From Takakia lepidozioides (lineage: Eukaryota > Plantae > Bryophyta): a stretch of DNA of 64,000 nt. Below, one piece after another: positions 5,438 to 48,042 of the stretch. The notes under the pieces are model-generated. The model was not told the DNA's origin, ran no database searches, and was given only the letters and a program-made list of their open reading frames with translations. The stretch is from the NCBI GenBank assembly GCA_030704615.1, contig CM060731.1:93000001-93064000 (forward strand), given 5' to 3'. The stretch's first letter is position 1; every line of letters begins with the position of its first letter. The position numbers and the translations under genes were made by a program.

Positions 5438-5595
5438 TGGGGCAAAGGGAATCCTCCATATGGATATTTTCAATTGCATTTTGTTGTATCAGACTTTTTT
5501 TGCAGTGTAATGTAAAATGCACCCCAAAACTCCTGGAATGAGGCAATATTCCATTCAAACTGAGATCCAACAGAAGCAGTTGTGGGGTCATTTCT

Positions 5596-5960: not shown

Positions 5961-6296
5961 GTCGCTGGGAATTGGCATGAGCGGAAGACGAAATATCATG
6001 AGCACAACTGTCAAAACTATAATTTTCCCTTCAAGGGCCGGCCGAATATATATTTGTTTTTCCTGACACATTGCATTAAATTAATGTTTTTTATTGTTTT
6101 TTATTTTCGAAATTTGTACTTCTGCTCATGAAAACCGATTGTCTTACTACTCCACTCATGCCGCTCATGCCGCTCATGCTCATGAAATAGCTAACCTCGA
6201 CTAGTGGTTGGACTAGTGGAATACTAGTGTGTGGTGTGCACATGTGTTGTGTGGTTTTGGACAACGATGTAGTTGTGTAGCAATATGTATGCGCAC

Positions 6297-8450
6297 GACA
6301 ATGCGGTGCCGCATTTCGGTTCCCGTGGTTCATGATTTTCAATCAGAACGGAAATGCGGTACCGCATTTCCGTTCCACCTTCACATACCTTAGTTGTTGA
6401 ACGGAAATGTCGTGCCGCATTTCAATTCTGAGAGTATGAAGGTCTCACCCGGACGGAAATGCGGTGCCGCATTTCCGTCCCACAGCTCCATGCCTGAGAT
6501 ACAAAAGGGAAATGCGGCGCCGCATTTCCGTTTTGGAATGTCGGAAGGTGCAACTCAGACGGAAATGCGGTGCCGCATTTCAGTTCCGGTGGTTCACGAT
6601 TTTCAGTCAGAACAGAAATGCGGTACCGCATTTCTGTTCTGGAGAGTATGAAGGTCTCCCCCGAACGGAAATGCGGTGCCGCATTTCCGTCCCACAGCTC
6701 CATGCCACAGATACAAAACGGAAATGCGGGGCCACATTTCCGTTCTGGAATGTCGGAAGGTGTGACTCGGACGGAAATGCGGTGCCGCATTTCAATTCCG
6801 GTGGTTCACGATTTTCAGTCAGAACGGAAATGCGGTACCGCATTTCCATTCTGGAGAGTATGAAGGTCTCCCCCAGACGGAAATGCGGTGCCGCATTTCA
6901 GTTCCCGTGGTTCATGATTTTCAATCAGAACGGAAATGCGGTACCGCATTTCCGTTCCATCTTCACATACCTTAGTTGTTGAACGGAAATGCCGTGCCGC
7001 ATTTCCATTCTGGAGAGTATGAAGGTCTCACCCGGACGGAAATGCGGTGCCGCATTTCCGTCCCACAGCTCCATGCCTGAGATACAAAAGGGAAATGCAG
7101 CGCCGCATTTCCGTTCTGGAATGTCAGAAGGTGTAACTCGGATGGAAATGCGGTGCCGCATTTCAGTTCCGGTGGTTCACGATTTTCAGTCAGAACGGAA
7201 ATGCGGTACCGCATTTCCGTTCTGGAGAGTATGAAGGTCGCCCCCGGACGGAAATGCGGTGCCGCATTTCCGTCCCACAGCTCCATGCCACAGATACAAA
7301 ACGGAAATGCGGCGCCGCATTTTTGTTCTGGAATGTCGGAAGATGCGACTCGGACGGAAATGCGGTGCCGCATTTCAGTTCCGGTGGTTCACGATTTTCA
7401 ATCAGAATGGAAATGTGGTACCGCATTTCCGTTCCACTGTCACATACCGTACTTGTTGGATGGAAATGTGGCACCGCATTTCCGTTCTGGAGAGTATAAA
7501 GGTTTCCCCTAGATGGAAATGCGGTGCCGCATTTCCGTCCCACAGCTCCATGCCACAGATACAAAACGGAAATGCAATGCGGTGCCGCATTTTAGTTCCC
7601 GTGGTTCATGATTTTCAATCAGAACGGAAATGCTGTACCGCATTTCCGTTCCACCTTCACATACCTTAGTTGTTGAACGGAAATGCCGTGCCGCATTTCC
7701 GTTCTGGAGAGCATGAAGGTCTCACTCGAATGGAAATGCGGTGCCGCATTTCCGTCCCACAACTCCATGCCTGAGATACAAAAGGGAAATGCGGCGCCAC
7801 ATTTCCGTTCTAGAATGTCGGAAGGTGCGACTCAGACGGAAATGCGGTGCCGCATTTCAGTTCTGGTGGTTCACAATTTTCAGTTAGAACGGAAATGCGG
7901 TACTGCATTTCCGTTCCACTGTCATATACCGTACTTGTTGGATGGAAATGTGGCACCGCATTTCCGTTCTGGAGAGTATAAAGGTTGCCCCCGGACAGAA
8001 ATGCGGTGCCGCATTTCCGTCGCACCGGTGCATGACTAAGATGCAAAACGGAAATGAGGCGCCGTATTTCCGTCCAACAGGAATCGAAAGTAGCATACCG
8101 GACGGAAATGCGGAACCTCATTTCTGTCAACTGGATTCCATTGAAAGAGACCGGACGGAAATTCGGCACCGCATTTCCGTTCCTGCCTATCCAAAGTGTC
8201 CTAGTCGATTAAAATGCGTTGTCGCAATTATTTTCTACCGTGTGTTCCTAGTCCCGTTGGACCTAAATGCGATACCGCATTTCCGTTCCACCATGGGCCT
8301 GCTTTTACAGTGGACTGAAATGTGGTACCGCATTTCCGTTGCACCAGTATTTTGGTTTCCCTGTTGACGGAAATGCGGTGTTGCATTCCTGATAACAGTC
8401 AACGAGAGGATGATGTCAAACTGAGATGTGGGACCGCATTCCCATTCAGC
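6297..8450. repeat. Array of type-B 22-bp palindromes (GGAAATGCGG[CG/TA/TG]CCGCATTTCC), ~53-bp period, roughly 40 units
   Basis: Sites at 6350, 6403, 6455, 6508, 6561, 6614 and onward; about five recurring ~31-bp spacer types; the array degenerates towards 8450. Confidence 0.95.
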
Positions 8451-8837
8451 CATGTGCAATGGGTTGCATTGTTCCGAAACAACGCAATTGCGGCCTGTCT
8501 TAATGAGCACAACTTGGTTGTCTAACCGTTTTAACTAACAGTCCTGGCACTTGTCAGTGCGAACGTTCATGTCTGCACCGCGAATACTGGTTGATCCACC
8601 CTCAAGAGAAACTGTCAGGAGATGTTATTTCGTCGCCGAATCGGCCATCATTGTCATACTTACTGGATATGGAATCACACCTCCCACCTTCATGCATGTA
8701 GCTATAAACAATACTTTCCACTTCAATGTGCGACTTCCAATCGTCGATGGAGTCCGCAGATCCACTTAGATGGTGCCGGTGAGCCTTGGTCTGTCGCTAT
8801 ACTGAACCTCACACTTGTCAACTTCGTGTGGTCTTCA

Positions 8838-11445
8838 ATGGCTCCGAATTCCTACGCTATAGTTTGCTGTCCTCCGCAACTTGGGAGAGCCTGGATCCCA
8901 AACGAGGGAGGACTTTGCAGAGTGACTGAAACTTACCTTTGTTCCAAATTCAGGCTCAAACCGGGCACGGTTTATTTGGAAGAAGAAAGGAAGGATGTTC
9001 CTGGACAGGTTGACGAGACCATTGTCGTGCTAGGTAACGACGGAGGTTGCAGAATCGAATGGCACGTACCCCTATCAGACACCATCCTGTACCGCGCTAT
9101 GGGAATGCCCATTCCCTTTCCGAATCAGTCGCTGCCCACACCATCCACAAAGGAGTCGGGAAATCGACAGGCGGCCACTGCCAACAGAGAGGTATGCAAT
9201 GATAATCATTCCCGACCTGGACCGTCAAGACCCTCCATAGCTTCTCGTGTGGACGTATTCGACATTTCTGACGAGGAAGATGAGTGCATTGAGGTCCCCA
9301 TGTCCTCCACACGGTTGTTCAAATCCGACATGGACGTCTCTGCAGGTGCTACGCATATACCCTCGAGCATAACTCCAACCCGGTCCATTGTGCAGCTCCT
9401 ACGACAACATCACCTCGATGGTTCTCGCTCGAAGCTGGCTGCTCTCGACTATGCCAAATTTTCAATCAGGAAGGTAACGTATCTGCCTCCCGAAGTCGAT
9501 GGCAATGTCATCTTCGAGTTTCCACCTGTTACTTCGTCAAACAAAGCCTCAGGGATGTTAATAGACATGGATCGAAAGCATGACGGACACCCTTGGTGTG
9601 TGACAAAGACCAGTAGCACAAAAATTGCTGATGGTGTTCGTGTACGATACGTCCTCTGTGCGGGGAAGCTGAGGTGCCTCAATCCCGCCTGCTTCCACTT
9701 TCTCTCCAAAGGAGGGCGGAGAAACGAGACGGATTGGACTGGCACAACGCATCATCCATTCATTGTCTCCAGCCAAGCTCCTGCGGGTACTTTCAAGTGC
9801 GCACATTGCAAAAGAAACCACCGACGTGCATGTCCATGTGCAGAGCCAAGCAATATGTAATCCATTTGCTCCCGGACTTGACTAGAGCTTGCATACACGT
9901 TGGGGTCCACTGCCACCCCTTGGCGAGAGGCAACATGCATGAGGTTGTGCAGGAAGCACACGACATCATAAAAGAGGAGGTGAAATTGAGCCCCGGAGCC
10001 AGACCAAAGCAGATGAAGGCAGCCCACAAGATTGCTCTTGGCAAAATCATGTCTGAAGATGGTTCAGACCCAGTGCCCTTGAACGAAGAGGAGATGCTTG
10101 ACCTGTTGGAGTCCGTCTCGCACGTTTGTAGTCCGAATGTGCGGAATCACATCGTATCTTGCAAGCAGGAGTTCGGCCGGGGGTCGGACATGCACTCAAT
10201 CTTGGAGGTGAAACGAATGACTGGATATGACTACATCCAAGGTAGCAGGTTTCCAGGGCAAGGCAGCGAATCCGATCGTTGTTACATTTTTAAAATGTCG
10301 ACGTGTGGGCCTAGGAGTGGAGTCGACTTGGTCACTCGCATGACAACTGAAAACTTGTCGAATGCTTGGGTGATGTTTGATCACATCAAGCGAATTACAA
10401 ACCATCAGTGGGTGACTATGGGTGCGCATGTTTATGACTATCACTCCAAGAGGCTCATGACGATTGCAATCTGCGAGATGAAAGGGGAGGACACACAGTC
10501 GGAGATGCATCTGTGGGAGGGCATAAACGAGCAGATGGCAAGGGCGGGATTGGCATAGCCCAATTTCAGGGATTCATGGCAGACAACGCTCAGGCCAACT
10601 GGGCAGCGGTGCGGCGTGTTTACGGTGAGGACCCCAATGTTCCAATGGAGGGGAAAGAGAGATCCTATGGATTCCATTGGATGTAGAGTCTATGTCACTA
10701 CACTACCAAATTTGTTGCTAGCTCATTCCAGGCTGAACACCGTGTCCTTTGTACGGCGTGGAAGGATGCACCCACATTTGATGACGCGGAGGTTAAGTTT
10801 GCTATCATCGAGGCTTGGTGGAACACGTCAGGTGCAGTGGAGACAACCAATCTGGGAGCTTTGCACAGCTGGTTGGGGTGGTGGCATTTCCGGTATCGAC
10901 AGTTCAGACAGTACATGCGGGAGGTATGATGCTGTCATTTTCGTGCAATTGTCTTTCTATTACGGACCTTTCCATTGGTCCCTCACCATTGTTTGTGTCC
11001 TTGTAGGAGCGGTGCTTGGATTCCGACACGGACATGCCGAACACGAATATGGCAGAATCAGTCCACTCCTCCCGGCGAGCGTCTTCTGCCGCACATCTGG
11101 TGGACGTAGTGACGGCCACAACGGAGGACATTGACAGAGCAATCATGCAGCAAGCCACGTACTACAAGTTCCTGAGCGGGAAACAATGGGGCTTTGGGCC
11201 GGACAGGGAGGAATTGTTGGTACGAACAGCTTCGAGGTCGAAGAATCCACTGAAATGGGCGACAACATTGCGAGAGAAGATCAAAGGGACGCCTCTGCAC
11301 CGCAGAGGTGAACACCTAGAGGGGGACGTCCGTACTCGCCTTGTGAGGCGGAGGATTGAAGAGGAACCCGGGTGCAAAGAGGATTCCTGGAGATCCGACA
11401 GGAACATTCGGACAGCACCTCGAGGTCCCGTCATGTTGCCGCACA
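8838..11445 (+). pseudogene. MULE transposase copy 2 (subfamily B), 3'-truncated; GT-AG intron 10924-11006
   Basis: Starts MAPNSYAIVCC and is near-identical to copy 3. Frameshift near 9810, stops at ~10556 and ~10684. Ends at GPVMLPH, where gypsy integrase sequence begins. Confidence 0.9.
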
Positions 11446-14400
11446 CCTTCCGGATGCGAAAGGGTCCCGCATACGGAGGTACGAACTTCGGACTCACTTC
11501 CGGAGGTAGTTGGAAATTCTTGATGTTCAACCAGACCTCCGTGCCTGCCTCAAACTTAACTTCCCTCCGCTTCCGATTCGCCTACCTTTCATACCGTTTC
11601 CTAGCTTTGGCAATGTTGTACTTTGCGAGCTTCAACAAACACTCGCGTTCTTCCAGTACCGCCGTTGCTGCCGGTTCCTCAATGTCCTGGGCGGCCCAAC
11701 TTGTCGGCACCAGAGGTGCTTTTCCATAGACCAATACGAAAGGGGAAACTCCCGTTGCGGAGTGTTTTGTGTTATTATAACAAAACTCTGCCGCATCCAA
11801 GTGTTCCACCCAGTCCGATTGGTCTGCCGACACGTAATTCCACAAGATCTGCTTCACCACGGAATTCACCCTTTCCGTTTGGCCGTCTATCGTAGGTCGG
11901 AAGGCGGTGCTCATCTTGAGCCTTGTCCCCATTTTCTTCCAAAGTGTCCTCCAAAATTTACTTGTAAACTTTGGATCGCGGTCCGAGACAATATCCTTCG
12001 GGAGTCCATGATGTTTGAAGACGTGGGCGAAATAGAGTTGCCCCGTCTCCTGCGCCATTGCCGTCTCCTTGGTGGGGATGAAATGGCCCATTTTACTGAA
12101 CATATCCACCACCACCATGATTGCATCGAATCCTTTTGACAGCGGCATAGCAGTCATGAAATCCATCGAGACACTTTCCCAAGACCCCTCTGGAATCGGC
12201 AAGGATTGTAACAGTCTCACTTGCTTTTTGTACTCGCTCCGGTTTTGTTGGCATGTGGTGCATGTCTTGACATACTCCTCGGCCTCCTCCCTCAGTTTGG
12301 GCTAGAAATACTCTTTCTTCAAGAGTGCCGCGGTGCGCTTGGCTCCGCCGTGGCCTGCAAGCGGGCCATCATGGCATTCTCTCAAGAGACTATTTCTGAT
12401 CCCTCCCTTCGGCACGTAGAGACGCTTTTGTTTGTACTAGAGTAGTCCATTTTGCAAGTGGAACTGCGATTTAACCCCCATCCTCAAGTCCCGCATCACG
12501 GACTTTGCCATCTCATCCTTCCGGTAAGCCTTCCGGATCTTCCTTTGGAGCGTCGTCTCGCCCCTATACACAAACATGAGCTGCTGCTTTCTACTTAAAG
12601 CATCGGCCACCACATTGTCCCGTCCCGGTTTGTATTGGATATCCACGTCACCACCGCCAAAGTATATTGCCACCTAAGTTGTTTTGGGGACAACTTAGGC
12701 TGCGTGGCAAAATACTTCACCGTGACATTGTCCGTGAACACCTGCACCGGGTTGGAACCAACACAAAGGCGCCAAAGCTCAAGGCAATGCACCACCGCCT
12801 TCATTTCCTTCTCATGCGTAGGCCACCGTCACTCCACTTCATTCAGTTTCTTATTTTCGTAAGCCACTGGACGTCCATCCTGCATGAGCACACCCCCTAT
12901 TGCGAAGTCCGACGCATCCGTATGAATCTCAAATGGACGGTCGAACTCCAGGATTTTGAGGACTGGAGTTCCGCCATCCGCTGCTTCAATTTGGCAAAAG
13001 CTTGGCCACAAAAAGTGTTCCATACCCAGACTTTGGATTTACACAGAAGGTCTGACAGCGGCCCCGCGATCTTGGCGAAATTTCTCATATACTTCCGGTA
13101 ATAGGAGGCAAGTCCTAGGAAGGATCGCACTCCCGGGACCGAAGTTGGAGGTTCCCAGTCCAAGATCGCCCTCACCTTTCTGTCATCCATTTTGATCCCA
13201 TCCTGTGTAATCACATGCCCCACTTTTGTGACCCCAAATTCGCACTTTGAAGCTTTGGCATACAGCTTCCCTTCCCACAATTTTTGGAACACCCTTTTGA
13301 GGTGCCCCAGGTGCTCTTCCTTTGTTTTCGAGTACACCAAGATGTCGTCGATGTACACGATCACAAAGTCATCCAACCACTCCTGGAAAAGGTTGTTCAT
13401 TAGCGTGCTAAAGGTCGCGGGTGCGTTGGTGAGTCCAAAAGGCATCACCAAGAACTCATATGAACTATGTCCTGCACGCGGTTTTCTCCTCATCTCCTTC
13501 CGCCATTTGGATTTGATGGTAGCCAGAGCGCAAATCGATCCGGCTGAAATACTTTGCTCCTGCCAACCGATCAAAGAGGTCGTCAATTCTTGGCAAAGGG
13601 TACCGGTTCTTGATAGTCACCTTATTCAGAGCCCTGTAGTCGACACACATCCGCAGCGTCCCATCCTTCTTGTCTGCGAATAGCACCGGGACTCCGTAAG
13701 GTGACTTACTCGGCCGGATGTACCCTTTGACATTAGATCCTTGAGCTGAGTCTTCAACTCGATCAACTCTCTGTGGCTCAACTGGTAGGGCACCTTGGCA
13801 GGCGGCTCCGATCCCGGTATCACCTCAATCTTGTGGTCAACTCCTCTTCGCGGTGGCAAGCCGCTTGGTAAATCCTCCGGCATCACATCTTGGTGTTTCT
13901 CCAAAATCCCCTTGATCCAATCTAGGCTCGGCTCCCCATCGCCTTCTCTCTTCACTTGTCTTACATAAAGCAAAAACTGGGGCTCGTGTGACTCCTCCAT
14001 GACCCACTCTTTTGCTGACAACAGGTTTATTCGCCCTCCTACTGGGTCGGGCGTTTCCGACACTCTTAAAACTTCGCCACCATTCCCACACGGTAGCGTG
14101 ACTATTCTCTTGCGGCCATCTATGACCGCTCCGGATTTGCTCAAAAAGGTCATCCCCAAAATGAGATCCACTCCATCGATCTCGCAAATGGTGAAGTTAT
14201 CACGTCCCTCCCAACTCCCGAGCTGAAGAGGAACATCGAACGCCAACCTTGTCGCCAATTGTGGTTCTCCTTTGGCAGAACGCACCTCAATAGAGGCCCC
14301 CACATCACTTGTCGGGAGTCCCAGCTTCCGTGCCGTTTTCAGTGTCATGAAGGAGTGCGTCGCTCCTGTGTCCACCAACAACGACACGTTAGTTCCGGAA

Positions 14401-29320: not shown

Positions 29321-29637
29321 TATCTTACGTCCCTAACAGTGTGCGATTTTGGTTTGGTGTTCTGCAGTCCATCTTTGCTCTGTTTAGCTCGAACAGCCAT
29401 TTGGGCATTTGCTGCGCGTTCTTTGTTCATTCTTATTTCCATTCTTTCTTCATCATTCAGTTTGTGTTCAGCCCTTTAGCCTCATGAAGAGAACGGCGGG
29501 AGATGGTGCGTCTTCCTCATCCAAGAGGCCTGTCTACGTGATCCTATCAGACAGTGATTCCGACAATGAAACGGAGCAGATCGCGAAGGACGAGGTCATT
29601 GCGAGAGAGATGCTCCGGGAGGAGGCGCTCCTTTCTC

Positions 29638-30243
29638 TACAGACCTTTCATCTTGGATGTTGACTGGTCCATTAAAGGGGTGGGGGCAGTGTTGTCACAA
29701 AAGGAGTATAAAAAGGAGAGGGTAATTGCATATGCTAGTAAGGTACTATTAGATGCTCAGCGTAAGTATCACCCTATGGAGGGTGAATGCTATGCTTTGG
29801 TGTGGGGAGTATTACACTTTAGGCAGTACCTGTATGGAACCCCTTTTGTAATCAGAACTGATCACAAACCACTGGAGTGGTTGGCAACGGTAAGTGACGC
29901 ATATGGACGCAGGGGTAGATGGATCATGATGTTACGGGATTTTGAGTTTAAGATTGTTCATAGGGCGGGTGCTAGGCATGCTAACGTAGATGCACTAAGC
30001 AGGTATCCAATGGGACCAGCGGAGGAAACCGAGGAACTCCAGGTATACTCTACTTCCCTGTACAGTCAAAAAAGGGAGGGGAGAAAGAGGGATGGAGCCT
30101 ATCTTCTTAAACTAGAGTGGGACAGGGGTGCCATCCATGCTTCTCTATTTCAGTATGAAGAGGGTAAGGAAGAGTTGAGAGAAGAGGCTCATAGGCAAGT
30201 AGGGTACAGCAGTGAGAGAGGGGAAATGATTTGCAAGAGATAA
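29638..30243 (+). pseudogene. gypsy RNase H fragment
   Basis: RPFILDVDWSIKGVGAVLSQ, IAYASK, EGECYALVWG, IRTDHKPL, NVDALSR. Confidence 0.85.
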
Positions 30244-31528
30244 GAGTACTATGCATGTGTGTGGGGTCTTTGGCATTTCAAGGAGAGACTGTTGGGAAGT
30301 CATTTTTCTTTAGAGACAGATCTGGACCCATACTGGTGGCTATATTCAGAACACCACATTGGCACAGACTTGCTTGGTGACTTTTCATTTGAGTTCGTCC
30401 CTGGAATAGATAGATTTTCCACAAGTGGTGTGTTGACCAAGGGCTATGCTCATGGTATCCTGAAAGGAGAACTAAAGCCAGGTATCATGCCAGATAGGGA
30501 AGGAAAGAAGGTAACTTTTGCAGCCAAGAACCAAGAGAGGGGCATTAACCAATCAGCCTATATCAATCTGGTTGGGGGAGGTATTTGGAAGGATGTGGGT
30601 GCAAGAAGGCAGGTTGTTCCTGCAATCAGCAACAAGGAAGGGGCAGATCTCATGTTCTCATGTCCCACCATCCATGTGGTGACCCGAGGAGCTCATGCGA
30701 GGTTTACTATTTCATGAGCAGAAACCATGAGCCATGAGCCATGAGCCGCATGAGCCGCATGAGCGGTGAGCCGAAGTCTAAGACACGCGGATTTCATGAG
30801 CGGACTCCTCCAAATTTGGAAATGCGGCAGATTAAACAAGTATTAAAATAATAGTTTTATATTTGACCTTGCCGTTTTTGGAAGTTACAGATCCTGTAAT
30901 GCGGCGAAGATATGTCGTCAGTAACAACTCCGCTCATGGTTTTTTAGATCCGCTCATGGAAATGAGTCACCGTGCAACGAGAAATCCAGTATACCACGGC
31001 AAAAGGACGTCGCATACTGGCCTGTATAGAGTATTCCGCGGTTTTATATGCCTTAACATTGGAATGAAGCTGACCCTTTTGCTGCGACTGAACCAATAGA
31101 GTCTGCACAATTATGTCATCTTCCAGTATTCGGCGGGAAAGTTTTGCAAGTGAACTAGGAAATGCGGTGCCGCATTAGGGTTCGCACGTGCGAAATTTCT
31201 GGGCGGTTTGGTGTTGCTGACTGCCGCATCTACCAGTACCTACGACGTTACTTGGAAATGCGGCGCCGCATTTCCTTGCCGGGGGTCGAATGAGGAAAGC
31301 AAAGTTTGGGAGAGCAGAAAAACAGGAACCCTCCAACACACAAAAATACATGCACGTGGAAACACGAGTGAATGACATAGTATTATCGACGTTCGAGCAA
31401 AACAGGTTACTGGTAGGCAAGACATAAGTCGGACCTTTCTGTGGCCAGAGTCAGAGCTACTTGCAGCAGTACAGTTCTACTATCCGAAAAGGATGGGCGT
31501 ACCATTGTGTTGGGACCGCAAGCCAAGG

Positions 31529-34500
31529 TCATTGGTCCCCTGGATCCATATTCAGAAGAGTGTGCACCTCTTGGGGGCTCAACCCTGGTGCATGTATGAA
31601 GTGATGAGTTGTGGAATTACACCGGAGTCTCTTTAGGTACACGTAGTACAGATGCTTGCAAGGGCAGTATGATGCCCCCTTGTTCGCCATGATCTGAAAG
31701 TCGGTGCAATTGCAGGTGGGTAATTCTGAAATGGTGATGGTGTACACCTCATTGCGAACAGCTGAGCCTGCCGTGGCCATCTGATACACACGCCCGAAGC
31801 CTGGTGGTGGCACTTCTGTCGAGCTCTGGATTGTACAGTTCATCCGAAGTGCATTCCCCATCCTTGTCTCGTTCACTTTTGAGGGAGGTCGCCGCCTCTT
31901 CGGTTTCCCCCAACGGTGTGTAGGATGCTTAGAGCTGTCGGGTCCCATTGTTCTTGCTCTCACAGGGGTCGGTGGTGGAGGCTGTGGAAGCGGAAATGGT
32001 TGTCTGGGGACGTCAGTGCGCTGCACCATCCGAAATCCTGCGGCGGTAAGGGCGTCGGCCTCAACCTGACTCAGATCGCAGCCTGGTTCCACCGGCCACA
32101 CCGGGGGAGCTTCTGGCATTGTTTGTATGCCGTACTTGGGCTTTCCATACACGTAAGTCATAATGTCGTGCCTGCAGAACCAGAACTGGGTGGTTGTCGC
32201 CTCCGCAAATTTTGCATGGACAAATCTTCCTGTAAAAGTAGGAGCAGAGACAACACCATCTGGATTCCTCTTTATCATCTCTAAACAACGTTGCCGTGTA
32301 TCCACTCGAATTGCGGAATACCTGCCTCGAAACGACGGCTCTGTGCGAGCAATTCTCCACTGTGACGCAGACACAGTCGTCTCCACAATGGCTTGGCCAT
32401 ACTGCATAACAGGGGGCGGAATCTGGGGCAAGCGAGCGGTGGGAATTTCTCGCACGGAATCCCCGCTTGAAGGCGATGGCGATCTGGAATTTCTTGGGCT
32501 TCCACTGCTGGAAGACACATTGTGCGGCAACATGACGGGCCCTCGAGGTGCTGTCCGAATGTTCCTGTCGGATCTCCAAGAATCCTCTTCGCACCCGGGT
32601 TCCTCTCCAATCCTCCGCCTCACAGGGCGAGTACGGACGTCCCCCTCTAGGTGCTCACCTCTGCGGTGCAGAGGCGTCCCTTTGATCTTCTCTCGCAATG
32701 TTGTCGCCCATTTCAGTGGATTCTTCGACCTCGAAGCTGTTCGCACCAACAATTCCTCCCTGTCCGGCCCAAAGCCCCATTGTTTCCCGCTCAGGAACTT
32801 GTAGTACGTGGCTTGCTGCATGATTGCTCTGTCGATGTCCTCCGTTGTGGCCGTCACTACGTCCACCAGATGTGCGGCAGAAGACGCTCGCCAGGAGGAG
32901 TGCACTGATTCTGCCATATTCGTGTTCGGCATGTCCGTGTCGGAATCCAAGCACCGCTCCTACAAGGACACAAACAATGGTGAGAACCAATGGAAAGGTC
33001 CGTAATAGAAAGACAATTGCACGAAAATGACAGCATCATATCTCTCGCATGCACTGTCCGAACTGTCGATACCGGAAATGCCACCACCCCAACCAGCTGT
33101 GCAAGGCTCCCAGATTGGTTGTCTCCACTGCACCTGACGTGTTCCACCAAGCCTCGATGATAGCAAACTTAACCTCCGCGTCATCAAATGTGGGTGCATC
33201 CTTCCACGCCGTACAAAGGACACGGTGTTCAGCCTGGAATGAGCTAGCAACAAATTTGGTAGTGTAGTGGGATAGACTCTGCATCCAATGGAATCCACAG
33301 GATCTCTCTTTCCCCTCCATTGGAACATTGGGGTCCTCACCGTACACACGCCGCACCGCTGCCCAGTTGGCCTGAGCGTTGTCTGCCATGAATCCCCTGA
33401 AATTGGGCTCCGACAATCCCGCCCTTGCCATCTGCTCGTTTATGCCCTCCCACAGATGCATCTCCGACTGTGTGTCCTCCCCTTTCATCTCGCAGATTGC
33501 AATCGTCATGAGCCTCTTGGAGTGATAGTCATAACATGCGCACCCATAGTCACCCACTGATGGTTTGTAATTCGCTTGATGTGATCAAACATCACCCAAG
33601 CATTCGACAAGTTTTCAGTTGTCATGCGAGTGACCAAGTCGACTCCACTCCTAGGCCCACACGTCGACATTTTAAAAATGTAACAACGATCGGATTCGCT
33701 GCCTTGCCCTGGAAACCTGCTACCTTGGATGTAGTCATATCCAGTCATTCGTTTCACCTCCAAGATTGAGTGCATGTCCGACCCCCGGCCGAACTCCTGC
33801 TTGCAAGATACGATGTGATTCCGCACATTCGGACTACAAACGTGCGAGACGGACTCCAACAGGTCAAGCATCTCCTCTTCGTTCAAGGGCACTTGGTCTG
33901 AACCATCTTCAGACATGATTTTGCCAAGAGCAATCTTGTGGGCTGCCTTCATCTGCTTTGGTCTGGCTCCGGGGCTCAATTTCACCTCCTCTTTTATGAT
34001 GTCGTGTGCTTCCTGCACAACCTCATGCATGTTGCCTCTCGCCAAGGGGTGGCAGTGGACCCCAACGTGTATGCAAGCTCTAGTCAAGTCCGGGAGCAAA
34101 TGGATTACATATTGCTTGGCTCTGCACATGGACATGCACGTCGGTGGTTCTTTGCAATGTGCGCACTTGAAAGTACCCGCAGGAGCTTGGCTGGAGACAA
34201 TGAATGGATGATGCGTTGTGCCAGTCCAATCCGTCTCGTTTCTCCGCCCTCCTTTGGAAAGAAAGTGGAAGCAGGCGGGATTGAGGCACCTCAGCTTCCC
34301 CGCACAGAGGACGTATCGTACACGAACACCATCAGCAATTTTTGTGCTACTGGTCTTCGTCACACACCAGGGGTGTCCGTCATGCTTTCGATCCATGTCT
34401 GTTAACATCCCTGAGGCTTTGTTTGACGAAGTAACAGGTGGAAACTCGAAGATGACATTGCCATCAACTTCGGGAGGCAGATACGTTACCTTCCTGATCG

Positions 34501-35125
34501 GAAATTGGGCATAGTCGAGAGCAACCAGCTCGGAGCGAGAACCATCGAGGTGATGTTGCCATAGGAGCTGCACAATGGACCGGGTTGGAGTTATGCTCGA
34601 GGGTACATGCGTAGCACCTGCAGAGACGTCCATCTCGGATTTGAACGATCGTGTGGAGGACATGGGGACCTCAATGCACTCATCTTCATCGTCGGAAATG
34701 TCGAATACGTCCACACGAGAAGCTATGGAGGGTCTTGACGGTCCAGGTCGGGAATGATTATCGTTGCATACCTCTCTGTTGGCAGTGGCCGCCTGTCGGT
34801 TTCCGGACTCCTTTGTGGATGGTATGGGCAGCGACTTATTCGGAAAGGGAATGGGCATTCCCACAGCTCGGTACAAGATGGTGTCTGATGGGGGTACGTA
34901 CCATTCGATTCCGCAACCTCCGTCGTTACCTAGCACGACAATGGTCTCGTCAACCTGTCCAGGAACATCCTTCCTTTCTTCTTCCAAATAAACTGTGCCC
35001 GGTTTGAGCTTGAATTTGGAACAAAGGTAAGTTTCAGTCACTTTGCAAAGTCCTCCCTCGTTTGGGATCCAGGCTCTCCCAAGTTGCGGAGGACAGCAAA
35101 CTATAGCGTAGGAATTCGGAGCCAT
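31529..35125 (-). pseudogene. Nearly intact MULE transposase (GCM/WRKY-like, DDE, SWIM)
   Basis: ORFs 33506-35329, 33036-33557 and 31529-32950. 1-nt deletion at ~33532 relative to copy 2. Intron 32960-33041 has its donor changed from GT to AT. SWIM PTCNCTDF...CPCKH. Confidence 0.92.
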
Positions 35126-35497
35126 CGAACACCGCACCAAGTTGGCAAGTGCGAGGTTCAGTATAGCGACAGACGAAGGCTCACATGCACCATGCGGAGT
35201 CCATCGACGATTGGAAGTCGCACATTGAAGTGGAAAGTATAGTTTCAAGCTACATGCATGAAGGTGGGAGGTGTGATTCCATAGCCAGTAAGTTAGACAA
35301 TGATGGCTGAATCGGCGACGAAATAACATCTCCTGACAATTTCTCCTGAGGGTGGATCCAGCAGTATTCTCGGTGCAGACAGGAGCGTTCGCACTGACAA
35401 GTGCCAGGACTGTTAGTTAAAACAGTCAGACAACCAAGTTAGACTGGCTGCAATTCTGTTGTTTTGGAACAATGCAACCCATTCAGGTTCAGCATGC

Positions 35498-36714
35498 GGA
35501 AATGAGGTTTCAGATTTCCGTCCGGAGTGATTCTTTCGATTGCTGCTGGACGGAAATACGGCGCCGCATTTCTGTATTGCATCTTGGTCATGCACCAGAG
35601 CGACGGAAATGCGGCACCGAGTTTCCGTCCAGGGGAAACCTTTACACTCTCCAGAACGGAAATGCGGTAACGCATTTCCATCCAGCAAGCACGGTATGTG
35701 AAGGTGGAACGGAAATGCGGTACCGCATTTCCGTCCGAGTCGCACTTTCCGACATTCCAGAACGAAAATGCGGCGCCGCATTTCCATTTTGTATCTGATG
35801 CATGGAGCCGAGTGCAATTCCGACCGCTTGAGACATTCATACTATCCAGAACGGAAATGCGGTACCGCATTTCCGTTCTGACTGAAAATCGTGAACCATC
35901 GGAACTGAAATGCGGCAGCGCATTTCCATCCGAGTCGCACCTCCCTCACAAGCTAGAACGGAAATGCGGCACCGCATTTCCGTTCTTATGAAAAATCGTG
36001 AAACATCGGAACTGAAATGCGGTACAGCATTTCCGTCGGAGTCGCACCTTCCGACATTCCAAAACGGAAATGCGGCGCCGCATTTCCGTTTTGTATGTGA
36101 GGCATAGAGCTTTGGAACGAAAATGCGGCACCGCATTTCCGCCAGGGTCAGACCTTAATACTCTACAGAACGGAAATGCGGTACCGCATATCCGTTCTGA
36201 CTGAAAATCGTCAACAGCGGGAACAGAAATGCGTCGCAACTTCCGACATTCTAGAACGGAAATGCGGCGCCGCATTTCCGTTTTGTATATGAGGCTTGGA
36301 GTTGTGGGACGGAAATGCGGTGCTGCATTTCCATCCATATGAGACCTTCAAACTTTCCAGACCGGAAATGCGGCACCGCATTTCCGTTCATCAACTAAGG
36401 TATGTGAAGGGGGAACGGAAATGCGGTACCGCATTTCCGTTCAAATTGAAAATCATGAACCACGGGAACTGAAATACTGTGCCGCATTTCCGTCCGGATC
36501 GCACGTTTCGACATTCCTGAACGGAAATGTGGCGCCGCATTTCCCTTTTGTATCTCATACATGGAGTTGTGGGACGGAAATGCGGCACCGTATTTCCGTT
36601 CAACAACTAAGGTATGTGAAGGTGGAACGGAAATGCGGTGCCGCATTGTCTTCCAACACGCACAGATGTGTAGTTTTGTGATGGTACTTAACGGAAATGC
36701 GGCGCCGCATTCCA
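35498..36714. repeat. Type-B palindrome array of copy 3 (about 20 units, ~53-bp period)
   Basis: Sites at 35498, 35552, 35605, 35658, 35711, 35764 and onward; spacers are reverse complements of those in 6297-8450. Confidence 0.95.
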
Positions 36715-37315
36715 TTTTCACTCCAACTCCAAATTTGAACACGTGGAGCAACCGAATTGCGGCACATGTCTGCACTCTATCTGACTGAAGTGGCATGAGG
36801 CGGCACGGCCTGACCGTTGGATAATGATGTTTGTTTTTCGGACGGCAGGCATATCCTGAACGATTCGAATTTCGTAATGACGCAAAGTCCACGAGGAGAC
36901 ACTTTCCTCCAACCCTTTCGAACCCAAGTGGTGCATCACCGCCGTTTCATCTTCTTTTGTCGTGTCTCCTCAATCACCCCTCTCGCGCCCTTTCCATCTG
37001 CACTCTTCGCCCCTTTTCCCTGTCTCTGTTCTTCTTATGCTCGAACCTGAGAGGGAGGGAGTGCGTGCACCAGAGAAGAGACATCGTCGCAAGCTCCGAA
37101 AATTGTACTTCGGACGTAGGCCAATGCCGAAGGGGAGAAAGTAGATGCGTCTATAGGAGGAGATTGCCATCTTGCAGCATCAGACCACGCAGGCAACCCA
37201 GCCACCAGTGAGAGCTCCGTGCTATCGGGATTCACCAGCTGATCGAGCACCGAAACCCGCCTCATTTTTCTTCTGCAATTCTTAGACTGTATGCTAGGAG
37301 ACTTGACTGCAGAAG

Positions 37316-39711
37316 ATGTTTGCATGCCTAACCAGAAAGGTGGACGTGCTGGAGGGATCGCAGGAATCCGAAGAGCTGCAGGCAGAGTCCGTGGAGCTAG
37401 CTGCAACACACACACCCAGCCGATCCACGAGCATGGGTCTTCCTGCCGGTCCTAGCCCTGTGCGTTTCAAGGACGCGGCTTCCAAGGGCAAGTCTTTGCA
37501 GTTCAAAGCCCCAGAGAGCGACTCGCCTTCAAAGGTCATGGAGAATCGCCAGCAGGGGTCTAGCCCTTCTCCAGCAAAGACGAAGAAGAAGCAGCCCGTC
37601 CTTCAACTTGTTTCTGAACCGGACCAGGCCGTTTCCCCCCCCACCCAGGCGAATGAAGCAGATTCAATTGCAGCAGACACCTTCACCTGCAAGAATGAGG
37701 AAGCACAAGGCAATTAGGGGGAGGGCGGAGCAGTCTCCCGCAAAACCGATTCCACGAGCTGAAGCCCAGTTCCTGCTTGATTTCCAGCCTGCTACAGCGA
37801 AGGCAATGGGATCGACCGTCGATCTGGTACCGGAGGAGGGTGCTGCCTCTCAATGTTCTCAGCAAGACTTGACCATAGTTGAGGAAGACCTGACCACTGA
37901 AGGCCCGGAGGAGGCCTCTGCAATAGCACAATTGTCCGCAAAGATTCCCCAGAGTGCAGCTCCAGTTGGGGATGCTCAAGCTGCTCAGCCCCTGCCGCCA
38001 CCAGCAGAAATGTCTCCGGAGGAATTCCAAAGTGCAGCGGATACAATGTTGGAGGAGACACATAGTAGCATTGGCAGAGTTCTGGGCAGCAGGGTATTCC
38101 AGCGGACTCTTCAAATCCCACTCTATCGCATGGTCTCCCTTCCCATCGTCAGGCAGGCACTTCCCGGAGATGTGGATAAGCTCAAGTTCGCATTTCGAGA
38201 AGGGTACCGTCTAGGTTCGCCAGCCTTCTACGTTTCCCTTGAGAATGAGGACGGCGAATCTCGTGGACCCACTGCGGAGGAATTGTCAACATGGGATACC
38301 CACTGGCACACTCGCAACGACGAATTCGAGGCAACCCTGAAGGGTGATCCCGACTTCGGCCATATGTCGGGTAAAATGATCCTTGTGTGGGACGGGAATC
38401 ACCGACTTCTCGCCTGGTGGGAGTACATCAAGCAGAACCATGCCAAGCACATTGGCTGGCATTACAAGGTGGAGTGTGTCATCCTCAAGGTGAAGGCGGA
38501 AGACTCCTCCTTGCTCAAGAATGCCATGGCAGACCTCAACTCGTAAGATACTCATACCCTCCCAAGCACGTTCGAAATGCGGTGCCGCATTTCGGTTTCC
38601 AATCTGTTTTGTTTCCGTGCTTCCGTGGACTGAACTGGAGAGTGTGCCTTGCAGGGTCACTGAAAATGCGTACGTGCATACCCACATGGCACATATGCTG
38701 TACAGGGTGAGGAAAATTGGTCTCACTGATCCGCACATGTTCGCGGAAATGCTGGAGCCCGAGCTCATTCAGAAAGCCGTGGCAAAAATTGACCGGACAT
38801 GGTATCGTCTCACTATGGATAGAATGGTGGAGGTGATATATGAAGTAAGTCGTCCTCCCATTTCCCTCTGCTCATCCTTCCCCAATTTCCGGTAATCTTT
38901 CCACATGAATCGAATGTAACGCTTCTGCATGTTTTTGTTGGCAGTCAAACATCAAGCTGGATTTGGCCCATGCCAAACGCTTCTTCATGGAAAGTGAGGG
39001 GCAGGTCAAAACGTTGCAGTCATTGACTGAGCACTTGAAGGAAGCCGGGGTCAAGTCCAGAACGAAATACAAGTCAAAGCTTGTGAAGCTGGTGGCCATT
39101 GCAGATCCGACACTTGGAAAGGACTTCATCCCCGAGATTGCAAAACACTATTCTCGGGCCATGCAGCCGACCATGCAGTTGGAGAAACTGCATGGCCTCT
39201 CAACGGCATGTGTTGAAGCGAAAGAGAAGGTGATGTTTCAATTCACTGAAGTTCCTTCCTAGCAATAACCACTCTTCTTCCTGCTCTTGACATTGGATCG
39301 GAAATGGCAGACACGGTGGCTGTCGATCTGGAATGCATCGGAGAGTATAAGGACAATGTGGTCTTTTCCACTCGAAGTTTCCGACCCTGCAGTGGATGTG
39401 TGGCTCAACCGCATGACTTGGTGGTTCCAGGTAATTCAAGGTATTTCCCCAGAGTTGCTTTTCTGAAATGAATTCCCTGAACTGCTACGTGACAATGCAT
39501 GTGGGAATCGCAGGTAATGACGAATGCGAAGGAGCGAGTCGTAATGCATACAAATTCGTTCGGCTTGTACGTCAAATGGGATGGAACACAGACATTGGAA
39601 GACTACGTGACACATTTCAGATGTGCTTACAAGGACAACCTCTTCGCCAGGGAGCTACAGACAGCAAGAAGGAGCGTGGAGTTTACACATCAGGAGGGAG
39701 CGGGGATGTGA
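37316..39711 (+). CDS. Transposon-borne spliced gene: low-complexity N-terminus, ParB/Sulfiredoxin-like domain, probable helical C-terminus; one apparent frameshift in the C-run near 37635
   Basis: LQIPLYRMVSLPIVRQALPGDVDKLKFAFREG...FYVSL...ILVWDGNHRLLAWW...VECVIL...AMADLN. GT-AG introns 38543-38654, 38845-38944, 39230-39310 and 39431-39513 join open exons in frame. The start codon and the last donor site are uncertain. Confidence 0.75.
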
Positions 39712-40399
39712 CTACTAATATCTTTCAGGGGTATGCCATATATATTTTTTAAATGGCTCCGGCCAAAGTCGGTGGAACGAAGAGCCGATTGTAAACCTTT
39801 GATAGTTATTGTATTAGATGCGATGAATTGGGTGAATTGGGGAGTCCACAATATCTCTATCTCATCGTTGTACAAGCGTACATTTCTTTGCATATTGCTA
39901 AGCTTATTTTCGTGTTGTCAAATTACATCCATATCAAAAGTGTTGAATACCATCTACTTTGTTTGTAAGTCCATTGTGTATTGCATACTTTTCAACACCT
40001 AATTCTACTAACATCTCATTTTTAAAGAAATTGTGGTGTGTAATCTTGCAGTGTTAGATCCATTATCAAGTAATTTAAAAATAGATGGACATGTATCACG
40101 ATATTTATCAATTGTTTTAAAACTGATAATTCTTTTCTTCCATGGTGACTCATCCGGTATAGCTGAGAGTCAATAAAGGAGGAATGAAAAGGCCAAAAGA
40201 ACCATCCTAGAGGTAATTCAGTGTCCATCCTGGTGGCTCATCCGGTATGGATGAAAAAGCCTGATAGAGGAACAAAAAATCCACACTGATAGCAAACTGC
40301 CAATTCCCAGTAGAGCGGGAGACAGAGGGAGAGAGGGGGCAACAATGAAAAAAAATGGGTTGGGGGGGGGGGGGAGGTCAAATGGTGGGGTCAGCTGCA

Positions 40400-42305
40400 G
40401 CATATGTCCAACACCAGATATCCTAAGTTAATCAACTCTATATCTTGGAAACAGGACCGCCCACCAACCTGTCAAATAGGCTAAGTCATGGCAGAAGACA
40501 GTAGAAGAGATTCTCAAGGACCTGGACCTGGAACCGCAAGTCTCCACCTTGCTGGATAAATCTGACTTAGAGGCTGTAGTGTCCAACCATGTCTATTGCC
40601 ATGAGATTGTCTGATGAAAATGAAGTTAGGCAAAAACTTCCCTCAACTTGTTTCCAGTCAGTGACATGGGGGAGGACATCTTGGATGACCTCAAGGGTCT
40701 ACCCACTCTCGGCACTAGACCGAAATTTAAACTCAGGGCAGGAAGCCTACCTTTGAACAACAAACAGAAGCAGAGAGGAAAGGGAGAGTGCAATTGCCCG
40801 TTGTGTGGGCAATCTGAAGACAGTACTCATTTTCTGATACACTGTCCGAGGTTCTCTCACCAAAGAGATGCTCTCTTCAAATCTATCAAGGGAATTGTGC
40901 ATGTACCTCTGTTTACTAACTTTGAAAGTCTCGAGGCTGAGCCAAAAGCCCAGCCCCTTTTGAGGCTTAGTTTTTGGGCATCTCACACACAGCAGATTGA
41001 TGCTTGTGTGAAGGGATTTGTAGAGGATATCTGGAAAACCCGGATTAATTCTATATGTGAAGGTAAGTCTTACTACCAATGTCAGCCCCTGACAGAGGTA
41101 GGATCTGTCCCTTTTGTTTCCCCAAGAGAGGGGGCAACAAAGAAAAACAGAGAATGTGGGGGGGGGAGGGAGTGACTGAGCAGCAGCAGCTCCTTCTGTG
41201 CTGCTCTCTTTAAGCTCCCGACGAGATAAATTCAAGGTCAGATGGTGGGTTCAGCTACAACATATGTCCAACACCAGATATCTTAAATAATCGACTCTAT
41301 ATCTTGGAAACAGGACCGCCCACCGACCTGTCAAACAGGCTAAGTCCTGGTAGAAGACAGTAGAAGAGATTCTCAAGGACCTGGACCTGGAACCGCAAGT
41401 CTTCACCCTGTTGGATAAATCTGACTTAGAGGCTGTAGTGTCCAACCATGTCTGTGGGCAACTTGAAGACATTATTCATTTTCTGATACAATGTCCGGGG
41501 TTCTCTCACCAAAGAGACGCTCTCTTCAAATCTATCAAGGGAATTGTGCATGTACCTCTGTTTACTAACTTTAAAAAAGTCGAGGCTGAGCCAAAAGCCC
41601 AGCCCCTTCTGAGGCCTAGTTTTTGGGCAACTCACACACAGCAGATTGATGCTTGTGTGAAGGGATTTGTAGAGGATATCTGGAAAACCCGGATTAATTC
41701 TATATGTGAAGGTAAGTCTTACTACCAACGTCAGCCCCTGACAAAGGTAGGATCTGTCCCTTTTGTTTCCCCAAGAGAGGGGGCAACAAAGAAAAACAGC
41801 TCAGTCACTCCCCCCCCCCCCCCCCAACCTTCTTTTCTTTTCTTTGTTGCCCCTGATGTCTCCTTCTCACTCCCTCTCTCTCTCCCTCTCTCTCCCTCTC
41901 TTATGTGCTACTCTCTTTTAAGCTCCCGACACCCTAAATTCAAGGTCAGATGATGGGTTCAGCTGCAACATATGTCCAACACCAGATATCCTAAGTTAAT
42001 CGACTCTATATCTTGGAAACAGGACTGCCCTGTCAAACAGGGTGAGCCCTGGGAGAAGAGAGTAAAAGAGATTCTCAAGGATCTGAATCTAGACCCGCAA
42101 GTCTTGACCTTGCTGGATAAACCTGACTTAGAGAGTGTAGTGTCCAAAGCCATGTCTGTTACCAGAAAATTGTCCGATGAAAATGAAGTTAGGAAGAAAA
42201 CTTCCCTGAACCTGTTTCCAGTCTGTGACATGGGGGAGGACTTCATGGATGCGCTCAAGGGTCTATCCCACTCTTGGTACCAGACCTAAATTTAAAGTCA
42301 GGGCA
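40400..42305 (+). mobile_element. Three tandem, internally deleted LINE ORF2 3' fragments
   Basis: Repeats start at ~40400, ~41250 and ~41960; KFKLRAGSLPL...CPLCGQSEDSTHFLIHCPRF is a CCHC Zn motif typical of the LINE ORF2 C-terminus. Confidence 0.75.
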
Positions 42306-42479
42306 GGGCGCGAATGTAGTTTTGGCCAGGGATGTTTGGCGTATAGCCTCTGAGGGTGAACCATCATGGTTCGTTCCCTGCTGATTGTCCTTGCGGAGTT
42401 CCCAGCATATAGTCGAATTCGACCGAGGCATCGCTACCTCGTCAGGCGCAAATACACCTGCCAGTACTGGGAGGGGTAA

Positions 42480-43847
42480 TGGAGAGTCCTCATCATCCCT
42501 TTTCTCTCTCCTGAGCATTCCCAATTGCTCAATTCTGTTTGCTGTTTCAAATGCCTCCTCCACTGTATTATGGGGTAACATATCCACTTTCTTCTGCAAC
42601 TCTGGCCTTAGTCCACTCACAAACCAAGTCTTCTGTAAACCTGGTGCTAGTACAGCAGCCAGCTTTTTCATCATCAATTCCATCTTTTCCATATACTCCT
42701 CAACAGTTTCATGCTTCTTTTGCTTTAACTGTTGTAAACTTCCATACACTTCATCCTCAGTTTTACTTGTCCTGAACCTATTTCGGAATGCTGTATTCAA
42801 GCCATTCCAGGTTAGGAAATGATTATCAGGGAATCTTGCATACCATTCACTTGCTTTCTTGATAAGTGAACAAGGAAACAATCTCATCTTGGCATCATCG
42901 CCATTCTCATTGTTCACTATACACATGTGCTCAAATTGGCTAATGTGTACATCGGGATCCCCTTTTCCTGAATATATTGGAAAAGGTGGTTTTGCCCGTG
43001 TTGGATGTAACGCCATCTGTGGCCCTACCTTCTGCCCACTGATAGGTGCTGGCACCCTTGCTGATGCTGGTCCTTGAGGACCTGTTGTAGTTGTGGTGGA
43101 TCTTCCACCAAGTGGTGGCCCCTGAGCACTCCCTACTACTGGCCCCACGATATTCATAGTATTCCCAGCTCCAGTTGCACTACTTCCCACATTCCCTGTC
43201 CCCCCAGAGCCAGATCCAGGCAGCCCGCTTGATCCCCCTGAGCCGACACCTTCGTTGGCCTGTGATCCAAGTGCTCCACTTGATCCAGGTCCAACGGGTT
43301 GGGATATCCTGGTTGTAGTCTCAACCTCAGCTGTTGGGTCTACTTCTTCATACTCTTCCTCTTCCAATTTCTTCTCTCTATTTTCATCCTCCAAGTTCTG
43401 CCCTTGGGTTTCTTCTTCACTCATGTAACTCAACTGCAATGGTGTTGGAGAGTCTGAACTCTCCGTTGGCTCTGCCACATCCTCTCCTCCTTCTTCACCT
43501 TCCGCTTCAGAAACTGGAGTTCCTGCTTTTGGTGTTCCATGCCAACTCTTATCAAAGATTTCTGTCAAATCTTTTATCCAGGGATGTACCTCAGATCTTT
43601 CACCTCGTGATTGATCTTCTTCCCGTACCAATTCCCTTAATCTTTCTTGCAAAGAAAAAGAAGGAGTGGCATCCAACTCTAGTTCTTCCAGTATGGGTGA
43701 TGTACTCCCTGATCTTAATGGTGTGAGAGGTCCAGATGATTCCCCTATGTCTATTCCTCTCTCCCAAAGATATGGATAATTAGCTTTCAGATAGCTTTCT
43801 CTTTTTGCTGAATATCTCTGGAGTCTAGCTTCTCTTTCATCACTCAT
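42480..43847 (-). pseudogene. Retrotransposon gag, C-terminally truncated
   Basis: FPIYSGKGDPDVHISQFE...LFPCSLIKKASEWY...TWNGLNTAFRNRF...QKKHETVEEY...FVSGLRPE; homology with the plus copy ends at DDEDS. Confidence 0.85.
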
Positions 43848-47393: not shown

Positions 47394-48042
47394 GGATGGA
47401 AATTCGGCGCCGGATTTCCATCCATCCGGGATTCGAACTACCTGCAGGATGGAAATTCGGCGCCGGATCTCCATCCATCCGGGATTCAAATTACCTGCAG
47501 GATGGAAATTCGGCGCCGGATTTCCATCCATCCGGGATTCGAATTACCTGCTGGATGGAAATTCGGCGCCGGATCTCCATCCATCCGGGATTCGAACTAC
47601 CTGCAGGATGGAAATTCGGCGCCGGATCTCCATCCATCCGGGGGATGGTCTCTGTCGGAGAGGTGCCGGCCTCTCCGCCGCTCTGTTGGATATTCGGTGC
47701 CGAATTTCCGTCCGGGGGTTGAAATATGACGGCCAGGTGCCGACCTCTCCCCCCTCCCCGACTGCATTGGAACGGCCCCGGATTGAAATTCGGCACCGTT
47801 TTTCCATCTGGGGAGGTTTTTATGTCGGCCAGTTTTCGATCTGACCCCCGACACGACTTCCTTTGGGGTGGCCCGGATGGAAATTCGGCGCCGAATCTCC
47901 ATCCAAGGGATGCTCTCTGTCGAACACGTGCCGGCCTCTACGCCCGAGGCGACTTCATCCGGGCGTCCCCTGTTGGATATTCGGTGCCGAATTTCCGTCC
48001 GGGGGTTGAAATGTGACGGCCAGGTGCCGGCCTCTCCCCCCA
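47394..48042. repeat. Orphan type-A palindrome array fragment
   Basis: 53-bp tandem units at 47398, 47451, 47504, 47557 and 47610, followed by sequence matching ~437-830. Confidence 0.93.

Follow-up and report, generated by a model that had tools for sequence, protein, structure and literature searches.

The DNA analyzed here is a stretch of 64,000 nucleotides from Takakia lepidozioides (GenBank assembly GCA_030704615.1, contig CM060731.1, positions 93,000,001 to 93,064,000 of the forward strand), referred to below as the window and numbered from its first base. At 30698-39711, a minus-strand transposase gene and a plus-strand gene of five exons, here called the accessory gene, diverge from an array of 21 palindromes. 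A preliminary description of this DNA had read a transposase and a four-intron gene placed divergently around about 20 phased palindromes, and this layout was borne out by the palindrome count and by the four introns, all of which are of the GT-AG type. The accessory gene encodes a protein whose N-terminal domain is predicted to adopt the fold shared by ParB and sulfiredoxin (Srx). The features of the element, with open reading frame abbreviated as ORF, are as follows.

30698 to 30719, minus strand: left terminus, reading CGAGGTTTACTATTTCATGAGC on the plus strand; the same 22-nucleotide end closes a further copy of the family in the window (copy 3)
30698 to 31528, minus strand: subterminal region, downstream of the transposase, with a cluster of GCTCATG heptamers, two palindromes, and a half-site
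31529 to 35329, minus strand: transposase coding region, in ORF segments 35329-33506, 33557-33036, and 32950-31529
33533 to 33545, minus strand: frame change in the transposase catalytic core (WVTMGAHV / YDYHSKRL), from frame -1 to frame -3
35552 to 36714, no strand: array of 21 palindromes in the divergent intergenic region, about 1.2 kb, each with a 10+2+10 core and 30 bp long with flanks
37316 to 37642, plus strand: upstream ORF from the ATG at 37316, encoding a Ser/Pro/Lys-rich N-terminal region, out of frame with exon 1
37806 to 38542, plus strand: exon 1, modeled from the first in-frame ATG, with the predicted ParB/Srx-fold domain at about 38106-38542 and continuing into exon 2
38573 to 38594, no strand: perfect variant palindrome, CGAAATGCGG TG CCGCATTTCG, inside intron 1
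38655 to 38844, plus strand: exon 2, a helical region right after the ParB/Srx domain (TENAYVH...)
38945 to 39229, plus strand: exon 3, a helical region; its donor at 39229/39230 matches a spliced contig
39311 to 39430, plus strand: exon 4, both borders of which match the spliced contig
39514 to 39711, plus strand: exon 5, with its stop codon at a structural breakpoint

The motifs on which the preliminary description based its ParB/Srx assignment, namely, IPL(Y)R, VR, and VWDGNHRLLAW, are all present in exon 1. Exon 1 gave no matches in a word-indexed protein search, and no ParB emerged when a profile was run against the PDB sequences. By exhaustive HMMER searching, 421 relatives of the exon-1 domain were recovered, 123 of them with E values below 1e-10. 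When 51 relatives were aligned, the conserved blocks read IPLCRx..VRP, FYVS, WDGNHRLxAW, and AMxDxN; in the WDGNHRLxAW block, the N is invariant over the 51 homologues, and conservation of G, H, R, and W is 90% or more. Three conserved ParB motifs have counterparts here, in VRP, DGNHRLxAW, and AMxDxN, and the Gly-x-x-Arg box of the ParB/Srx superfamily (GxxRxxA / DGHHR / GCHR) is matched by WDGNHRLLAW. The exon-1 domain was modeled by AlphaFold2 with a pLDDT of 90 and a pTM of 0.83, and the model was compared with the PDB by Foldseek, as the preliminary description had proposed. The best 50 Foldseek matches all belong to the ParB/Srx superfamily, with probabilities up to 0.99 and a best E value of 1.6e-2; they include sulfiredoxin, PadC, ParB, Noc, KorB, pNOB8 ParB-N, Atu1540, SbnI, and SerK. 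In an exhaustive structural comparison (VIA), 13 of 48,161 chains reached a Z score of at least 2, and the top 12 of these are members of the same superfamily, led by PadC (Z 8.0; root-mean-square deviation [rmsd] of 2.8 Å over 95 residues), KorB (7.4), Arabidopsis Srx (7.0), and SerK (6.5). Since the matches from both comparisons fall almost entirely within the ParB/Srx superfamily, the modeling supports this fold for the N-terminal domain of the accessory protein.

To the C-terminal side of this domain, the protein is predicted to be helical. A model of residues 165 to 610 of the Riccia homologue P0098 (pLDDT 86.6) places an all-helical region and a long helical hairpin after the ParB domain; its best matches are ParB (6sdk; 268 columns, E value of 3e-2) and KorB (Z 7.9; 197/201 residues), at an rmsd of 10 to 12 Å. 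A helix-turn-helix (HTH) after the ParB domain is plausible from this model. The region encoded by exon 2 is joined to the domain without an intron in the homologue P0001.

The five exons join in frame to give a protein of 509 amino acids. The preliminary description had placed four introns in the gene. Of these, introns 3 and 4 are missing from one contig of run X3, a run that we guess to be RNA, and the junctions fall on the predicted borders after correction for the stated cut offsets; these two introns are the part of the claim that the contig bears out. This contig comes from a related copy, about 93 to 96% identical; provided that run X3 is RNA, transcription and splicing as modeled occur in at least one member of the family. 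Upstream of exon 1, the ORFs at 37316-37717 and 37608-38546 lie in different frames, and the run of C at 37635-37642 holds one extra C. At 37635, contigs of other copies are shorter by one base, which would join the frames of the upstream ORF and exon 1. Within the domain, the IPLYR motif has Tyr where more than 90% of relatives, as well as the other genomic copies, have Cys, and the KMILVW motif has I and L where the other genomic copies have F and F.

The family to which the accessory gene belongs is large. Hypothetical proteins from the liverwort Riccia sorocarpa and from Adiantum ferns make up its named members, and in Riccia alone at least 39 paralogues are dispersed across the chromosomes. 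The long relatives can be aligned to residues 101 to about 485 of the spliced protein, beyond which they run on. In this continuation, P0153 and P0187 from Riccia and the metagenome contig L004 partially match PF01555 (N6/N4 DNA methylase), falling just under the Pfam cutoff, and mutual homology links the downstream modules of L002, L004, L009, Riccia, and Adiantum. These modules, among them L004:2590-3556, L009:2767-3502, and L002:9872-11131, keep a motif-I-like signature for binding S-adenosylmethionine, D..(A/G)S(T)G. Among the named Atlas clusters, those nearest to full-length P0153 are phage fusions of ParB_N with N6_N4_Mtase, at scores of 0.82 to 0.84, which we take as a lead only. Relatives in the liverwort, in ferns, and on metagenome contigs thus carry the same gene with a predicted extension that resembles beta-class N6A/N4C methyltransferases. 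When the modules of seven relatives were searched against the window, nothing was found below an E value of 0.05. Given this lack of a methyltransferase trace in the window, together with a breakpoint at 39706 (see below), the accessory gene is best read as a 3'-truncated gene of the ParB-methyltransferase-like type.

The palindrome pattern GGAAATGCGGNNCCGCATTTCC, with up to three mismatches allowed, has 83 matches in the window, against 0.01 expected, and 21 of these make up the array at 35552-36714. Among its 20 spacings, a length of 53 bp accounts for 16 and 54 bp for one, the remaining three measuring 89, 86, and 64 bp; TRF gave periods of 53, 106, and 192 bp, with higher-order periods of 106 and about 192 to 212 bp. 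With its flanks, the conserved unit is the 30-bp palindrome GAAC-GGAAATGCGG-YR-CCGCATTTCC-GTTC. In this array and in that of copy 2 at 6297-8337, the central dinucleotide is almost always CG, CA, TG, or TA, the pattern expected if a methylated central CpG had undergone deamination, whereas the CpGs inside the palindrome arms (GCGG/CCGC) are retained. A separate orphan array at 47398-47996 is built from a third, slightly asymmetric variant, GGAAATTCGGCGCCGGATTTCC, with a period of 53 bp and then 96 bp; neither a transposase nor a ParB-like gene lies near, and the array adjoins retroelement-like sequence.

The association of gene, array, and transposase on which the preliminary description rested recurs in a relative. 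In the divergent relative L008, a minus-strand transposase homologue (about 37 to 45% identical) and a plus-strand ParB-like gene (44% identical) are separated by about nine copies of GACCCTCTCGGCGCCGAGAGGGTC. The ParB-like gene of L002 has arrays of CAATGGTCGGGTCCGACCATTG upstream and within an intron. At L007, a metagenome contig, a very large tandem array with a period of 329 bp and more than 27 units, every one of them carrying TGTCGGATCCGACA (a CGG-AT-CCG palindrome), runs up to the ParB-like gene and resumes downstream of it, so that the gene is flanked by array sequence at 1155-10000 and 12407-14210. Across the four families, the CGG-NN-CCG core is common and the arms are private to each. 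The retention of all three parts in L008, and of gene and arrays in L002 and L007, indicates that the module is conserved as a unit and argues against chance capture.

The transposase has a SWIM-like CxC...CxH motif near its C terminus and a weak match to SWIM PF04434 (E value of 0.065; 13.2 bits, below the cutoff of 19.6). An intact homologue, P0166, is 34 to 44% identical (38% as a single figure), and its ten best family-bearing neighbors in the Atlas, which is based on a language model, all carry MULE, ZSWIM, or SWIM domains at a score of 0.93. The label "Mutator-like" seems reasonable for the transposase. P0166 and the two other transposase copies in the window, copies 2 and 3, all read through the point of the frame change at 33533-33545 in one frame, and the transposase of the copy at 30698-39711 is disabled by one frameshift.

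The preliminary description had set the bounds of the element at 30698 and 39711; the first stands, and the second does not. The 22-nucleotide end at 30698 recurs with 1 mismatch at 6178-6199, where it matches the end of copy 3, and the flanks of the two termini are unrelated beyond the terminus. Position 30698 is a true element terminus. The GCTCATG heptamer occurs 9 times in the subterminal 833 bp, with 7 of these in the terminal 100 bp, compared to 26 occurrences across the 64 kb, and this end repeat is common to both transposase subfamilies of the window. The subterminal region also holds palindrome copies at 31158-31179 and 31254-31275 and a half-site near 30820. On the right, position 39711 is the stop codon of the accessory gene. 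Contigs of other genomic copies (run X1) cover the gene continuously and stop at 39706, 3 bases before the stop codon, and the contig depth in the last bin is exactly the value expected for a stop at 39706. Because the similarity of other copies ends there, the right end is a breakpoint and not an element terminus. A candidate right terminus at 39786-39800, GTAAACCT, bears a weak resemblance to the 22-nucleotide end and was rejected.

Altogether, the copy at 30698-39711 is decayed: the transposase is frameshifted, the N-terminal part of the accessory gene carries a frameshift, the conserved Cys is changed to Tyr, and the methyltransferase-like part is gone. Fragments of Ty3/gypsy elements lie on both sides, at 29554-30243 and 42255-43847; the former, just left of the insertion, encodes an RNase H domain (PF17917, E value of 7e-32), and the latter, to the right of the element, is a minus-strand gag/capsid ORF.

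The window holds two more copies of the family, arranged head to tail within 1-11445.

Copy 3: variant array at 15-1447, transposase at 1850-5422, terminus at 6199; about 69% identical to the element at 30698-39711
Copy 2: 39-site array at 6297-8337, truncated transposase at 8622-11445; 88% identical to the element at 30698-39711

In copy 2, the transposase breaks off in the third ORF segment, near residue 165. All three transposases of the window are disabled, each in a different way, copies 2 and 3 carrying stops or frameshifts of their own. A frameshift shared by the element at 30698-39711 (copy 1) and copy 2 was ruled out, as the frame of copy 2 is uninterrupted at that point and its defects are different ones. 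No second copy of the ParB-like gene was found in the 64-kb window. Copy 2 is cut at its array by the terminus of copy 3 (6199), and the gene side of copy 3 lies off the window; the missing gene is thus uninformative in both. The palindrome of copy 3 is GGAAATTCGGCGCCGAATTTCC, which differs from that of the other copies by a symmetric pair of changes (ATTCGG..CCGAAT versus ATGCGG..CCGCAT), so that the palindrome variant covaries with the transposase subfamily, copies 1 and 2 standing on one side and copy 3 on the other. In the 3' subterminal region of copy 3, at 5560-5960, about seven hybrid half-palindromes resembling GGAAAAATGGCGCCGAATTTC are spaced by about 60 bp.

We conclude that the region is probably a decayed, right-truncated copy of a large land-plant family of Mutator-like DNA transposons that carry a ParB-like accessory gene. 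Several results weigh against this reading. The MULE domain PF10551 has no Pfam match in the three transposase copies of the window or in P0166, and the MULE identity given in the preliminary description, favored by the Atlas neighbors of P0166, is on this account plausible only. To the right of the element, no inverted copy of the 22-nucleotide end was found, nor was a duplicated flank of 8 to 11 bp; the failure to find terminal inverted repeats and a target-site duplication of 9 to 11 bp is explained by the missing right end. A Pfam scan of the gene exons gave no match at an E value of up to 1, PF02195 (ParB_N) included, and PF02195 had no match at an E value of up to 0.1 in ten homologues. 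Although the model of P0098 matches the N-terminal plus DNA-binding domains of ParB and KorB, the HTH is not confidently identified in it. The listed differences between copies comprise 9 synonymous and 15 nonsynonymous changes, with no clear constraint. Within the DNA examined, no array or transposase was found at L001 (Riccia) or L003. The methyltransferase-like module has D-(L/M/V/F)-P-x-G at motif IV, where DPPY is expected, and given this D-x-P-x-G and the PF01555 matches below the cutoff, the module of the relatives may not methylate DNA; it may be a divergent or an inactive enzyme. Finally, the present data do not separate the ParB-like protein from the transposase as the reader of the palindromes, which also occur in the subterminal region (31158 and 31254) and covary with the transposase subfamily.

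For an intact member of the family, we infer that the ParB-like protein may bind the palindromes, and that it would do so as a dimer by way of the helical region after its ParB domain. The ParB domain, if it binds a nucleoside triphosphate (NTP), would serve as a switch, and the methyltransferase-like part would be brought to the element's own divergent promoter, where it could mark the element epigenetically or protect it. The transposase would recognize the separate GCTCATG end repeats. None of these activities is any longer open to the decayed copy at 30698-39711. A fuller version of this scheme, which we consider unlikely, would make intact members a eukaryotic ParB/parS-like system: an NTP-switched dimer on phased palindromes would spread or bridge, its methyltransferase-like domain would write a mark of the N6-methyladenine/N4-methylcytosine (6mA/4mC) type or block silencing by 5-methylcytosine over the divergent promoter, and the palindrome arms would coevolve with the protein so that each subfamily recognizes itself.

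An alternative of somewhat low probability is that the palindromes are transposase binding sites, an internal enhancer, or repeats of the subterminal type used in transpososome assembly, the ParB-like protein acting elsewhere or without specificity. The pairing of the two transposase subfamilies of the window with the two palindrome variants, ATGCGG..CCGCAT and ATTCGG..CCGAAT, points this way, as do the palindromes and half-sites in the 3' subterminal regions of copies 1 and 3 and the presence of an array and a transposase without a ParB-like gene in copy 2. Copy 2, however, is the one cut at its array by the end of copy 3; in L002 and L007, the arrays adjoin the ParB-like gene or lie within it, and the surrounding 5 to 10 kb hold no transposase; and the termini have a distinct repeat, GCTCATG, which both transposase subfamilies share.

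The view that the ParB/Srx domain has no more than an NTP-dependent role in regulation or catalysis, like that of sulfiredoxin, SerK, or the phage ParB partners of DNA-modifying enzymes, and does not read the palindromes, the arrays being a promoter or insulator bound by host factors, appears quite improbable. It draws on the DGNHR box: DGNHRLLA, without the Glu and the initial Arg of the CTP-binding motif GERRxRA, is closer to the H-R boxes of Srx (GCHR) and of the ParB-like nuclease and kinase branches than to the motif of the CTP clamps, and according to a survey, ATP, GTP, and CTP are all among the ligands of the ParB fold, which often occurs in fusion with further domains. On the other hand, family-specific palindromes remain beside the gene in four divergent families, and the helical region after the domain aligns, if weakly, with the DNA-binding domain of ParB and KorB. 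That the gene is a captured host fragment in the style of Pack-MULEs, with no role in the element and with an unrelated satellite as the array, is hardly credible: the copy at 30698-39711 is truncated and decayed, and Riccia has many dispersed paralogues with no arrays near the one locus examined, but the three parts stay together in L008 at about 40 to 44% protein identity, copies of the same palindrome are present both inside an intron of the gene and close to the terminus, and the ParB-like gene family is known only as multicopy.

The preliminary description knew of no such module in a eukaryotic transposon, a statement that has to be withdrawn, as ParB-like accessory genes with adjacent inverted-repeat arrays have been published for algal transposons. 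PAG3 of red-algal Plavaka, Zisupton, and Mutator elements combines a ParB-like N-terminal domain with a 2-oxoglutarate (2OG) oxygenase; tandem inverted-repeat arrays adjoin the gene in Bostrychia, and the protein was proposed to bind and modify its own element (Petroll et al. 2025, bioRxiv 10.1101/2025.02.11.637652). The Ectocarpus element Sola1-1_Ec32 has a gene for a ParB-like protein with an N4C/N6A methyltransferase opposite its transposase (Dinatale et al., PMC12477816). Fusions of ParB-HTH with Dam occur in chlorophytes and chytrids (Iyer et al.), and in a 2025 survey the eukaryotic occurrences of the ParB fold are mainly sulfiredoxin. Our literature search found no paper on the module in land plants.

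The algal systems are the closest known. In PAG3 and Sola1, as in L008 and here, an accessory gene with a ParB-like N terminus lies inside a DNA transposon beside the transposase; it is transcribed opposite the transposase in Ectocarpus and has tandem inverted-repeat arrays beside it in Bostrychia, and the Ectocarpus protein has the N4C/N6A methyltransferase fusion that is predicted for relatives of the present gene. The hypothesis, that the protein binds and modifies its own element, is also the same. By comparison with the published descriptions, the present family differs in that it belongs to land plants, with liverwort and fern relatives and a Mutator-like transposase. PAG3 differs from it in carrying a 2OG oxygenase in place of a methyltransferase, and the copy at 30698-39711 has no enzymatic part of either kind. 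As similar algal cargo has been published, the family extends a known kind to land plants and does not found a new one.

Other systems resemble the module in part. The phage and plasmid fusions of ParB_N with N6_N4_Mtase (PF02195 + PF01555) have the order seen in the relatives, a ParB N-terminal domain followed by a beta-class amino-methyltransferase, but the plant proteins are not matched by PF02195, match PF01555 partially and below the cutoff, and have a helical insert of 250 residues and D-x-P-x-G at motif IV. With the CTP-dependent clamps of the bacterial ParB/parS, Noc, and KorB systems, the accessory protein is predicted to share the fold of the N-terminal domain, the counterparts of the conserved boxes, and a helical domain after it, and the palindromes are clustered candidate sites. 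Unlike those systems, the present gene is eukaryotic and spliced, has DGNHRLLA for GERRxRA, and faces a palindrome of 22 to 30 bp with a CGG-NN-CCG core instead of a 16-bp parS; moreover, no ParA-like partner was found in a Pfam scan of the main ORFs of 30698-39711, a scan that was not exhaustive. VANC of the Arabidopsis VANDAL Mutator-like elements is similar in function only, as an accessory protein of the Mutator superfamily thought to recognize the repeats of its own element and alter the element's epigenetic state; its fold is unrelated and not ParB-like, and it lacks a methyltransferase.

Earlier reports of transposon-borne ParB-like proteins with private palindrome arrays were brief, confined to algae, and without experiments. 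The copy at 30698-39711 is dead and truncated and adds little by itself. What the family adds is the module in land plants (in the Takakia genome, a liverwort, and ferns), its conservation as a unit in which arms private to each family enclose a constant CGG-NN-CCG core, and, if run X3 is RNA, its transcription and splicing. Because site, spacing, and protein domain are well defined, the module is suited to binding, nucleotide, and methylation assays, and it may offer a tractable system for asking whether transposons mark themselves epigenetically.

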